Part shown: positions 1 through 63,853 of the stretch, in pieces
Layout of the letters: the number at the start of each line of letters is the position of its first letter
Position numbering within the stretch: the stretch's first letter is position 1
Origin: Bugula neritina
Lineage: Eukaryota; Animalia; Bryozoa
Direction: 5' to 3'
DNA: 64,000 nt
NCBI GenBank assembly: GCA_964035545.1
Contig: OZ037765.1
Span: 4,536,698 to 4,600,697 of the forward strand
Notes under the pieces: generated by a model
Seen by the model: only the letters and a program-made list of their open reading frames with translations
The model's database searches: none
Told to the model about the DNA's origin: nothing
Position numbers and translations under genes: made by a program

Positions 1-3000
1 AGTATCCACGGGAAGACGGGGTACTGCATGAGGTCGTTGTAAGACCTGCCAGCCAGCGTGTTGAGGTGCATCAGGTACTGGAAATTGCTGATCTCACCTC
101 TCTATAGCACAACAAAACTTTTTTTATCCACCTGTCATACCATAATGCTCCCACCTTACACATACTATACTATATTATATACTATAATACTCCCACCTTA
201 CACATACTATACTATCATACACTCACATTACACATACTGTACTATATTACATACTATAATACACCCACCTTACATATAATATACTATATTATATACTATA
301 ATACACTCACCTCCCACCTACTGGTTACTGATCGTTCACTGATTAAACTGCTGATGAGGCCGGAGCCCTGCTCCATCTTTGTACTCTGCTTCTGGCCAGC
401 CACCGAGTGCAGAGAGTGGTTGGTAAGAGATGGGGCCACTGACATAAGTCTACAGACACAAATAGTTACTAGGTTGATTAGTAAAAAGAGAGTCCCACAC
501 AGTATGTACATAAAGTATTAGCTTTTTATCAGAAAGTTTTACAAAGCTTCATCTCTTAAAGCCTGTATAGCAATAATGGTACGATATAACACAGATGACA
601 TGGTATTGAACTGAATATGGAAGTGTTGACAACTCCAGACTATTTCATACTAAGAGCTAAACTAAGAACATGTTTTTAGCAGTTGCTTATATATAATTTG
701 TTCTGCTGTGGAATAGAATTTAGAGCCCGGTTATTTAAAGTAAGTAGGCTAGAGTTGCTGTGCATACTTGGTCAGAACTTTATTCCTATTTTTAGGAGGA
801 AAGGCCAGAAGGACGTTCCGCCCGTCAGAGTTGAAAAGCTCTAGGGCTATTGGCTGCAGAAGGTACCGTCTTTTCAGCACCTCTCTGATGTCATCGTAAT
901 AGAACTTGAGGCACCTGAAAATATAGACAGAAAAATAGTCTTACGACGTGACCATTCATGTGGATGTACACTCAAACCGAGCTTTACCAACACAATTTGA
1001 GCCTAAACACTAAATTAGCATTACTCCAAGCTAAATATAAAATATGAAACTGTTTTTCTTTTATAAAAAAGATTAGAAAATGATAAAACATGCAAGCATT
1101 TATTTAAATTTCAGAGCATGTCATTAAGTTGCCACATTTCATTAGCTTGGCTACATTAATCAATAAACTCAAATACATTCATAATCAGAGAAAAACTGCA
1201 AGATATAGACTACTGCGAATTCCTACGCTATCAAATAATTAAAATAGATATTTGATTATTTTATTGAGTCAACTATTACGGTGCAACACAACTGATTTTC
1301 ACATTGAAACATATAGAGTAAACAGACCTAGAATGTTCTAGTGGTTTTAACAAATGTTGATAACCAGCTCTACACCTGACTAATGCACTTTGACGGTCAC
1401 TAATCTAAGACTAGCTACCTCAACCTATTTAGACTTCAACAAATTATCAAAGAGAATATTATAAAAAGCTCTGAGCCACGAATCTTTCACACTCACAGTT
1501 TCTTAGTGGGAGAGTTGGAGCTGGTAGCCGCGGACGAGTTCGTAGAGGAAGTGTAGTGTGGAACTCTGGGAATGATAGGGTCGCGATATTCCTCAGCAAT
1601 ACTGTCTATATCTTGAATCTGATTGGTCTCAAGCAGAGTGAAGCCGTCTAGGATGTAGTAACGCTCTCGACCGAGCAGTAGAATTCCTTCAAACGACTCC
1701 AGACCTTGAACTCTGGCACATCTGAACATTGGGCCAATCTGTGAACAATACAAAGGATTTTAGTACCTACTAAATTCTCCAAAAACCCTACCAAAACTAC
1801 GTCTTTACATTAGTACTGTGGGATGCAATTCGCTGATTAACATGTCACTCTAAAGCAGATTTTAAGAGATCATTCAACTGGAATTACAAAAAGATTGGGC
1901 ATTTTGAAGTCATGTAATTTTTAAACAAGTCAGCAATCAATTAATGTGTATACAGGCATATATATATATTATTATATAGAAATCTTCCAGAAAAGATGCT
2001 ATCAGATGATTTTTAGGTATTAGCCAGGATGTAATCAGCAGCAATAGAATATCTGTTAGAAACACCTTTTCTCCCTCATCCAACAGTCTGGTCAAGGTTT
2101 GGTGGTTGTCTAAACTGGTCTTCACAGATTCCTCGAGGTTTGACTCTGATTGGCTAGAAGTGCTAGCTTCTGATTGGCCGATGTCATCAGTCGACGTAGA
2201 GACTTGATCCGCATCCATAAGTTCTTCTTCATCGATAGTCTCCGAGCGAGGGATACAGGAAGTGCGAGGAAGCAGACTCGGGGCAGTGAGAACTACAGAA
2301 GTTTCCGGAATAGTTCAGAGTCACACTACAGTAGCTCGCAGTCACACTAAAGTAACTTACAGTCAACTAGAGTTGATAATAAAACCCAGCCATCTCATTA
2401 CAAGTATTTTAGCATAGAGAAGTCAAGTACAGCAGGCAGTGGTAATACTCACGACTATTTTCACTTGTGGAGAGGTCCTGGTCCAAGTCTATGCTGGTGT
2501 CTGTAGAGACAGGAAGTGCTACTGGCTGATTCTGCTCGTCTTCTATCAGACTCTCTAACCGTCTAGTCTTGTGGAACTGCTCACTGTCTCTGCTAACTGG
2601 GGACTTGTACTTGGTGGGTCTCAGCTGCAACACAGTGGCTGGCTAATATGTACTCAATGGTTATTTTTTACTTATAATAATGTGTGAGCTTGACTAAAGA
2701 CACAAAATCACCAGAGTGGATACCTATTTCTGTACTCTAATATCAGTCATAACAATTAACTTATAAGTCCTTAGCTCAATTTAATAAAAAACCCTTTACA
2801 TCAGGCGCTTCTCACAGGGATAGTGACTATAAACTTGCATGAGTTTTATTTAACTTAAAAACGAGCCCATTAAATGAACGGAAGAATTAGCCAATTAAAC
2901 ATCAGTTGACAAACACACAATATACTTAGAGAGCACATAGCAGACATACATCAGCCTTGGCCCTGTACGGGTAGTTTTGGTAAAACTCGTCATTCTTCTC

Positions 3001-61751: not shown

Positions 61752-63853
61752 ATGGCGGACAGAGAGGAGGCTGGACCTCCGCAGCTGGACAGTGAGAAGG
61801 AAAGTTTGAACAAACCGGCAGACAAAATTGCAGACGTTGAGCATGTGGAAGACAGCGTGGACACATCCTGTGGGTATACAGCCACTTGTAAGCCTAAGTT
61901 CTTGCAAAGGCTGGCTAATCCCACAGTCTATTTAGTGGTCATATCTATTTGCAGCATTATGCAAGGTAGGTTAGAATAAATACAACATGCCGTAGTGTAA
62001 AACTGGATGTTTTATTTTGTTCAGAAACTATTTCGTTATTAAAAATAATATTTTGTCAAGTTTCAGCATATCAATGTGATGGGGAATATCTACTAGATTC
62101 ACTGTAAAGGAAGTACTGAGATCAAACAGTATTCATCCTAAACCTCTTTTGTTTTCCTAAACCAAAATATTGCTGAAAATTGTCATTGTTACACCATTAA
62201 TCCAGACATGATTGCACTTTTTAAAAGTTTATAGCTTTCAGCTAGGGATGTGTGAATATATATTTGGCTATGATAGCAGATTATTACATGCCTTTGTTTG
62301 CCTAAATTTAGGAATATGAGGTTGATTGAAACCTTCAAACTGAAGGTCAAACATAACATCATTCATCACAGCGAATAACAATGAATATAAACTCATTGTT
62401 ATAACATGTCTAGTGTTAATTTTACAGTGTATCGCCCAGTTATTCCCATCATCTGCAATTGTTAGGGTTTGCTATATAAATGGTGTCAAAAACAGCCCAT
62501 CTCAACCTGTCAAACTGTTGTATAGATATTCCACATGTTTATCTCAGTTTTGACAATTGCAGTGAATGGTATTACTGAGTAACACATACTATATTCTAGG
62601 GTTTGCAGTGAATGGTATTACTGAGTAACACATACTATATTCTAGGGTTTGCAGTGAATGGTATTACTGAGTAACACATACTATATTCTAGGGTTTGTAG
62701 TGAATGGTATTACTGAGTAACACATACTATATTCTAGGGTTTGCAGTGAATGGTATTACTGAGTAACACATACTATATTCTAGGGTTTGCAGTGAATGGT
62801 ATTACTGAGTAACACATGGTATATTCTAGGGTTTGCAGTGAATGGTATTACTGAGTAACACATACTATATTCTAGGGTTTGCAGTGAATGGTATTACTGA
62901 GTAACACATACTATATTCTAGGGTTTACAGTGAATGGTATTACTGAGTAACACATGGTATATTCTAGGGTTTGCAGTGAATGGTATTACTGAGTAACACA
63001 TACTATGTTCTAGGGTTTGCAGTGAATAGTATTACTGAGTAACACATACTATATTCTAGGGTTTACAGTGAATGGTATTACTGAGTAACACATACTATAT
63101 TCTAGGGTTTGCAGTGAATGGTATTACTGAGTAACACATACTATATTCTAGAGTTTGCAGTGAATGGTATTACTGAGTAACACATACTATATTCTAGGGT
63201 TTACAGTGAATGGTATTACTGAGTAACACATACTATATTCAAGGGTTTACAGTGAATGGTATTACTGAGTAACACATACTATATTCTAGGGTTTGCAGTG
63301 AATGGTATTACTGAGTAACACATACTATATTCTAGGGTTTACAGTGAATGGTATTACTGAGTAACACGTACTATATTTTAGGGTTTGTAGTGAATGGTAT
63401 TACTGAGTAACACATACTATATTCTAGGGTTTGCAGTGAATGGTATTACTGAGTAACACATGGTATATTCTAGGGTTTGCAGTGAATGGTATTAACAATG
63501 TCAACATATCATCATATGAAAGGAGATACCTCCTCTCCAGCAAAAACTCTGGTCTGGTTGCCAGTTTCTATGACATAGCTGCCGGCATCACTGTAAGTTT
63601 CCTCCTTTTCACTCGCCTCAGTTTTCCATTCCTTAGTTGCGTTTATTCTGAGCTGCCATTGCACTCTTTCTGCAGGTTTTGCTGCTGTAGGTGTTGTTTG
63701 TGGGATATTTTGGAGGAATGGGTCATCAACCTCGCTTTCTTGGAGTAGGAGTTGCTTCCCTTGGGTTGGGATGTTTCATCATGTCAATGGCTCATTTCAC
63801 TTCTCCTATGTACGTACCGGAAGGCGCCAAGGGTTTGGCATGTGATATTGAAG
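61752..63853 (+). CDS. Solute carrier organic anion transporter (OATP/SLCO4A1-like), paralogue C, first three coding exons; continues beyond the window
   Basis: Exons 61752-61965, 63474-63592 and 63691-63853 are homologous to exons 1-3 of paralogues A and B ([49 protein letters not shown]). Confidence 0.9.
62558..63494 (+). repeat. 46-bp acceptor + exon-start array at SLCO-C exon 2 (20 AGs)
   Basis: Same unit as in paralogues A and B; AGs every 46 nt from 62598 to 63472. Confidence 0.97.

Follow-up and report, generated by a model that had tools for sequence, protein, structure and literature searches.

Minisatellite-like repeats built on an exon-intron boundary, the so-called mirages, have been described in the amphioxus genes Adh3, BflGb6/9 (globins), PGBD5 and TnC (PMC3087553, PMC3902484), and their origin has been termed unclear (PMC3087553). 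In humans, junction-spanning variable number tandem repeats (VNTRs) are found in intervening sequence (IVS) 7 of F7 (37 bp), IVS13 of CBS, intron 2 of IFI6, LMNB2 and intron 4 of PDGF (PMC1557585). A related process, intron gain by tandem genomic duplication, is represented by the Rogers model, potato RdRp (PMC4974935) and human internal tandem repeats (PMC2812944). Here we describe arrays whose unit contains a splice junction in a stretch of 64,000 nucleotides from the bryozoan Bugula neritina (the window; C1:4,536,698-4,600,697), which lies 4.5 Mb from the start of the 35.6-Mb scaffold C1 in an assembly of 216 Mb and carries part of a WDFY3 gene and of an SLCO/OATP cluster.

These arrays are mirages by each of the defining features tested: the boundary lies in the unit, the unit is private to its locus, splicing is normal and copy number varies. 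No description of mirage-type repeats in bryozoans was found in the literature; what is new is the phylum, together with the scale, the excess measured at exon edges and a class of arrays lying near junctions, whereas the phenomenon itself is known. On balance we favor the reading that they are neutral, locus-private minisatellites born of recombination and filtered by exon definition.

Splice-junction arrays in WDFY3 and SLCO genes

A preliminary description, made from the letters of the window, reported at least 14 splice-junction arrays in four genes, and Tandem Repeats Finder (TRF) recovered all 14 where they had been placed (Table 1). Seven belong to WDFY3 and seven to three SLCO/OATP paralogs; because the 46-, 19- and 43-mers are common to the paralogs, only three of the latter are independent and the 14 arrays represent 10 independent events. 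They form, as had been proposed, the majority of the long repeats in the window (14 of the 21 arrays with a period of at least 10 and a TRF score of at least 100). An exon portion of 11–27 nt, ascribed to most units, occurs in eight of the 10 unit families, the other two carrying 1–2 nt. Donors (7) and acceptors (5) are both represented in the junction-array sample, with unit sizes of 14–52 nt. Genome-wide, the 35-bp unit (20948..21175) is present at its own locus only; the remaining units correspond to exon ends at their own loci, and units are shared only among the SLCO paralogs. The 19-bp SLCO unit consists of a pyrimidine tract plus AG/GTAAGT, and YAG/GT occurs in the 19-, 24-, 35-, 40- and 43-mers, which is also expected from the donor consensus. 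Units of all array classes are poor in AA/TT (0.11 vs. 0.23), and minisatellite units at any location are rich in purine-pyrimidine alternation (0.60–0.69 vs. 0.51).

The arrays occur in independent DNA data and are therefore real. Run X1 contains the array sequence and both flanks at the four arrays examined, and an independent metagenome contig from a different lineage (identity to the window of 95.5% in exons and 88–91% in introns) carries the 22-mer as well as the first part of the 40-mer. Copy number differs: the 22-mer has 15 units in the window and 8 in the other lineage, where a short-read assembly may undercount, and the 46-bp array has 4, 10 and 20 units among the SLCO paralogs. Array units carry ordered variants. 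RNA runs that bear the same organism label diverge from the assembly by about 4–5% in exons, as expected for cryptic sibling species. The array at 137..312 nearly fills its 209-nt intron, and in both lineages the 22-bp array constitutes the entire WDFY3 intron 10381-10052, its GT and AG included; this intron has lost its unique middle, probably when the sequence between the donor and a 4-nt match to it inside a unit was deleted, and the repeat is now the sole spacer.

The exon-proximal copy, claimed to be the one that yields the expected protein, is indeed selected by homology in all 14 arrays, as first donor or last acceptor. For WDFY3 the five donors and two acceptors listed in Table 1 were obtained from a spliced protein-to-DNA alignment with WDFY3 homologs in which all GT and all AG were scored alike; each SLCO model was built from a profile of the remaining paralogs, and the proximal-copy rule holds for the 46-, 19- and 43-mers in paralogs A, B, and C. 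Contigs of RNA from three studies (9150-15000) show the joints 10051>10382, 11538>12192 and 14322/4>14825 and an exit at 9357 into the next exon, that is, the proximal copy at all four junctions covered, where normal splicing is thus unaffected; no joint to a non-proximal copy is listed in them at these junctions, although contigs drop rare forms. The decoy copies equal the used site on a splice matrix. Stops or frameshifts from the other copies, also claimed, are found in most arrays (the non-first donors of the 40-bp array give a stop), the exceptions being one open copy of the 16-mer (+48 nt) and the 24-mer, in which all copies are in frame and stop-free and the first donor (12191) is used despite this.

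The use of last acceptors had been presented as a puzzle, in that simple first-AG scanning would pick the wrong site. Acceptor scanning begins at the branch point, and in three of the four acceptor families checked an A resembling a branch point is found 18–29 nt upstream of the final AG (in the 16-bp array 26 nt upstream, inside the penultimate copy), so that the "first AG" is no obstacle. The puzzle is presumably answered by exon-centric proximity, the preference under exon definition for the sites nearest across the exon (PMC9225289); for donors, oriented scanning yields the same choice (PMC1557585).

Table 1. Junction arrays, other arrays and genes in the window; n× is the number of copies.
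Feature	Position	Strand	Gene	Remarks
Donor array, ~42-bp degenerate unit, 4.5×	137..312	-	WDFY3	used donor 310
Donor array, 40 bp, 3.2×, 23 nt exon	9253..9379	-	WDFY3	used donor 9356 (first)
Acceptor array, 22 bp, 15×, 11 nt exon	10041..10381	-	WDFY3	used acceptor 10052 (last)
Donor array, 24 bp, 17.6×, 14 nt exon	11784..12205	-	WDFY3	used donor 12191 (first)
Donor array, 26 bp, 7.5×, 1 nt exon	14633..14826	-	WDFY3	used donor 14825 (first)
Acceptor array, 16 bp, 4.4×, 15 nt exon	16522..16592	-	WDFY3	used acceptor 16537 (last)
Donor array, 35 bp, 6.5×, 27 nt exon	20948..21175	-	WDFY3	used donor 21148 (first)
Acceptor array, 43 bp, 2.2×, 26 nt exon	35702..35796	-	SLCO-A	acceptor 35728 (last)
Donor array, 19 bp, 13×, 13 nt exon	39748..40000	-	SLCO-A	donor 39987 (first)
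Acceptor array, 46 bp, 9.7×, 21 nt exon	42249..42696	-	SLCO-A	acceptor 42270 (last)
Acceptor array, 46 bp, 4.3×	48545..48743	+	SLCO-B	used acceptor 48722
Donor array, 19 bp, 3.7×	52351..52422	+	SLCO-B	used donor 52364
Acceptor array, 43 bp, 2.7×	56603..56718	+	SLCO-B	used acceptor 56693
Acceptor array, 46 bp, 20×	62557..63494	+	SLCO-C	used acceptor 63473
Junction-near array, 22 bp, 19×	3186..3622	-		ends 26 nt before acceptor; unit without splice site
Junction-near array, 21 bp, 2.9×	2315..2373	-		ends 22 nt before acceptor
Junction-near array, 27 bp, 2.5×	25664..25731	-		starts 16 nt after donor
Array of intron interior, 26-28 bp	25155..25264	-		starts 67 nt after donor
WDFY3/Alfy (BEACH-WD40-FYVE)	1..26939	-	WDFY3	42 introns in window; 7 junction arrays
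SLCO/OATP paralog A	35387..43302	-	SLCO-A	13 exons; PF03137
SLCO/OATP paralog B	47870..56911	+	SLCO-B	13 exons; start approximate; PF03137
SLCO/OATP paralog C	61745..64000	+	SLCO-C	first 3 exons; extends right of window; PF03137
HPF1-like gene (presumed name)	~29490-32750	-		

Excess of arrays at exon edges

Positional bias was measured on an annotated sample of 242 introns in 234 kb, 175 of them defined by homology with searches run exon by exon; ab initio gene models, of low confidence, were used only for genes other than WDFY3 and SLCO. Arrays of at least three copies were each collapsed to one unit, shared SLCO arrays were counted once, and two nulls were applied: seeds spread evenly over all introns, or placement inside the array's own collapsed intron (conditional). 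Junctions are spanned by 14 of the 27 intronic arrays, against 3.3 expected under the even null and 6.3 under the conditional one (P = 4e-5); conditioning thus about doubles the expectation and halves the effect without removing the excess. Within 35 nt of a junction lie 20 of the 27 (7.0 and 10.1 expected). Among window introns only, nine of 10 independent arrays span a junction (3.2 expected conditionally, P = 3e-5), the window having been picked for this trait; outside it 10 of 17 arrays lie within 35 nt (4.3 or 4.9 expected, P = 0.003 or 0.002) and five span a junction (2.0 or 3.0 expected, P = 0.04 or 0.10). The excess stays under a null weighted for composition (AA/TT and alternation; 14 vs. 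3.8), the GC gradient along introns is small, and array density in introns is six times that outside genes.

Arrays without a splice signal are also concentrated here, with six of 13 within 35 nt of a junction (16% expected) and two ending 1 nt before the AG, which indicates that the target is the exon edge and not the splice site. On average, exon sequence makes up 0.46 of the unit, which matches random breakpoints. Seeds of two copies that lie outside the arrays called by TRF form a small sample (n = 12). An exon-edge bias of about 2–4-fold in a zone from about -27 to +35 nt is therefore supported as real but modest. The earlier proposal that duplication is targeted to exon-intron boundaries stands as far as this bias goes; the effect is weaker outside the window and extends to arrays that contain no splice signal.

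Whole-genome pattern counts (three tandem 8-mer copies at 14–44 nt spacing) were used as a genome-wide test. The donor 8-mer AGGTAAGT gave 1,691 triple matches and occurs at 10,571 single sites, a ratio of 0.160 and about nine times that of GT-dead variants (428 for 25,319; 0.017), while a non-donor AGGT core gave 109 for 51,559 (0.002) and reversed words 0.001–0.007. As the reversed-word control alone overstates the donor excess (~190-fold), the GT-dead and non-donor controls were added. When arrays were counted on scaffold C1, where the matches listed are nearly complete, 22 donor arrays were found against 12 control arrays for 2.4 times fewer sites, or ~4.4-fold; more than half of the donor-like single sites there are background. 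Placement in introns alone explains ~1.8-fold of the donor motif excess. Acceptor words gave 1823 matches against 981 for AG-dead words and 498 and 1147 for reversed ones, counts that are diluted by background, with singles uncounted, and give the excess weak support. By rough extrapolation from motif matches unchecked against exons, some thousands of junction arrays would exist in the genome.

Some observations concern the wider sequence context. In the far arm of C1 lies an SLCO gene (L040:8242-8797, L041:775-5229) with six intronic arrays, five of which span or adjoin (<=21 nt) a junction, on both sides of one exon. WDFY3 runs ~5.5 kb past the left end of the window and is 51% identical to WDFY3 of Biomphalaria. 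To the right, SLCO-C continues with the 43-bp array present and the 19-bp array absent, and four further paralogs follow, making a cluster of seven. The gene which we take to be HPF1-like has six exons and AT-rich introns without minisatellites. A ~200-bp dispersed repeat with a tRNA-like internal part, both intronic and intergenic (2763-2844, 37605-37823, 43962-44172 and 61488-61699), is probably a short interspersed element. Elsewhere in the assembly, the small contig C138 is composed of a ~765-bp higher-order satellite, and C7:5.00-5.01 Mb (50% GC, long open reading frames, retrotransposon-like) was excluded from the statistics.

Origin of the arrays and competing explanations

Tandem duplication as a route to new introns, invoked in the preliminary description, finds no support in these genes. 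The positions of all seven WDFY3 array introns are shared with the snail Biomphalaria and six of the seven with a fish, so they are ancestral and no intron was gained; the SLCO array introns are shared with array-free paralogs. The arrays themselves are not conserved: in other animals most of the corresponding junctions are array-free, and the orthologous introns in L051 and L052, the snail and the fish are without these ones. Biomphalaria WDFY3 has its own 44-bp donor array of 14 copies (L056:65633-66242), in which the majority of the distal copies read GC instead of GT, and mirages thus occur in molluscs too. A closer relative (65% WDFY3 protein identity) has a 28-bp donor array (L051:10896-11092) at the same donor as the window array at 137..312, with a different unit; this could be due to chance, as five of 42 donors carry arrays, or to an old shared array. 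Both units contain a G-rich word that presumably resembles the human minisatellite core.

Under the favored reading, 16–52 bp of local DNA that happen to include the junction are duplicated in tandem on the DNA level and then grow and shrink like a VNTR, as the unit structure and copy numbers show. Such duplications arise or persist two to four times more often around exon edges, mainly in genes and toward chromosome ends, a bias shown by the statistics above. Its most likely cause is recombinational repair (gene conversion or strand invasion): begun within the conserved exon, repair would slip, or anneal again in the wrong register, once homology drops at the intron edge, and the rarity of tolerated deletions next to the exon may help arrays persist. 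The spliceosome would then define the exon and take the nearest donor and acceptor, the other copies being excised. With the nearest sites taken across the exon, the full exon is kept; site-shifting duplications would be removed by selection, so that all survivors point into the intron. The statement that arrays always extend into the intron is correct as an observation and follows from survival. The arrays would act as neutral spacer, and the all-repeat intron would now need a minimum of ~3 copies.

The SLCO genes bear on the recombination step. Paralogs A, B, and C are old, with a background nucleotide identity of 58–75% and mostly unalignable introns, yet their arrays are 96–100% alike, and all three shared arrays sit at the edges of gene-conversion tracts. 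In exon 2 the three genes agree completely over 71 nt next to the 46-mer, with unrelated intron beyond the array. The shared arrays break off at different phases, in intron sequence that is unrelated, and the 19-mer is missing from paralog C, as is the conversion of exon 5. Conversion is patchy (tracts of 97–100% identity in exons 2, 4, 6, 7, 10, and 13), and intron 6 is co-converted in A and B. The position of the arrays at tract edges is suggestive of repair from exon homology that ended out of register at the intron edge.

Several points weigh against a recombinational origin. The conversion tracts in exons 4, 6, 7, and 10 have no arrays; the matching DNA run differs from the assembly by one variant in 5.8 kb (9150-15000), so present allelic divergence is low here; the spanning excess outside the window is weak when taken alone, and the sample there consists mostly of SLCO loci and is not random. 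The recombination step is also one that we infer. In its favor, 14 of the 22 donor arrays on C1 lie within 5 Mb of a scaffold end (P = 1e-4), a distal bias that may partly reflect gene density. A deletion shadow beside exons, or a chromatin or transcription effect, may likewise cause the exon-edge bias.

Pure chance, by which random minisatellites in short introns straddle junctions in a fixed share and the window was chosen as a rich one, is unlikely but deserves attention. The window is extreme, with arrays at 14 of 71 introns (20%) against six of 171 (3.5%) elsewhere, and both the doubled conditional expectation and the P of 0.10 for spanning arrays outside it point the same way. Chance is opposed by the excess that persists under the conditional null, by the arrays within 35 nt outside the window, by a donor to GT-dead contrast of which intron placement explains about 1.8-fold, and by the composition-aware null, which changes nothing.

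A somewhat more doubtful alternative traces the seeding of duplications to transcription, splicing or chromatin at the exon edge; candidate seeds, just as doubtful, would be paused Pol II, R-loops, nicks linked to the spliceosome, or linker DNA next to nucleosomes positioned on exons, with flap-processing errors. The density of arrays in introns with its peak on junctions, the unit sizes and the involvement of donors and acceptors alike agree with seeding, whereas the distal bias and the conversion tracts favor recombination; control minisatellites on C1 have a like distal bias. We are similarly skeptical of a broader version in which a germline process linked to splicing or transcription makes exon-edge duplications genome-wide, at thousands of junctions, alike in bryozoans, lancelets and snails.

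Another proposal of the preliminary description, that decoy or recursive (ratchet) sites tune productive splicing through their number of copies, is improbable and found no support, and the same holds for a role of the arrays in adding peptide repeats of variable number. Such functions could explain the full splice-site scores of the decoys, the AG/GT of several donor units, the pyrimidine tract of the 19-mer and the open frame of the 24-mer. The equal scores, however, result from homogenization and AG/GT is plain donor consensus (76% G at -1); moreover, the RNA contigs, in which rare or recursive events are invisible, contain only proximal joints even for the 24-mer, arrays are not conserved at orthologous junctions and the splice-signal-free arrays show the same position bias. 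No splicing function of the arrays was seen, and they are most likely a harmless by-product of recombination.

Copy-back from spliced RNA or cDNA, the RNA-templated origin suggested earlier, has no evidence in its favor and is very improbable: all units are contiguous genomic exon plus intron DNA, and the units of 20 arrays contain no spliced exon-exon junction and at most 4 nt from the far side of any. Templates of mRNA or cDNA are thereby ruled out and, a pre-mRNA template apart, the case is largely refuted. Repeats do break short-read contigs, yet an assembly or polishing artefact can practically be dismissed in view of run X1, the other-lineage contig, the ordered variants and the arrays that other species have of their own.

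Comparison with known systems

Mirages were hitherto known from a handful of genes, whereas the compact bryozoan genome probably holds some thousands. At this scale it becomes testable what biases duplication to exon edges and how the spliceosome chooses among 10–20 identical sites, acceptors included, which fall outside the F7 scanning model. If proximity is the cause of the choice, the arrays demonstrate exon definition at work in an invertebrate whose introns measure 200–500 nt. Junction arrays will mislead gene predictors; their biological weight is small if they are neutral by-products.

Recursive ratchet points are conserved, single, and kilobases apart in very long introns. The bryozoan arrays share with them AG/GT words inside an intron and differ in having unconserved copies 16–46 nt apart in introns of 200–1500 nt. 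With the Rogers model they share tandem duplication over AG/GT; there, however, an exonic duplication creates a new intron in place, whereas the WDFY3 array introns are those of snail and, with one exception, of fish.

The likeness to the human VNTRs is closer, since in both the first monomer lies across the exon-intron boundary, identical pseudo-donors follow and the most upstream donor is used. The human cases are rare single genes and concern donors only (PMC1557585), whereas ~40% of the bryozoan arrays are at acceptors; CBS and IFI6 also splice at the two pseudo-sites that follow, something not observed in the bryozoan RNA contigs.

The closest counterpart is found in the amphioxus mirages, which are likewise minisatellite-like duplications of the exon-intron boundary on the donor or acceptor side, with variable copy number, unaffected splicing and diverged edge copies (units of 10–72 bp in Adh3). 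Intron gain was proposed for amphioxus and there is no sign of it in the bryozoan arrays. These belong to another phylum, have been counted and tested against nulls together with a splice-signal-free class near junctions, and include one intron made entirely of array and a spread among paralogs with conversion tracts.

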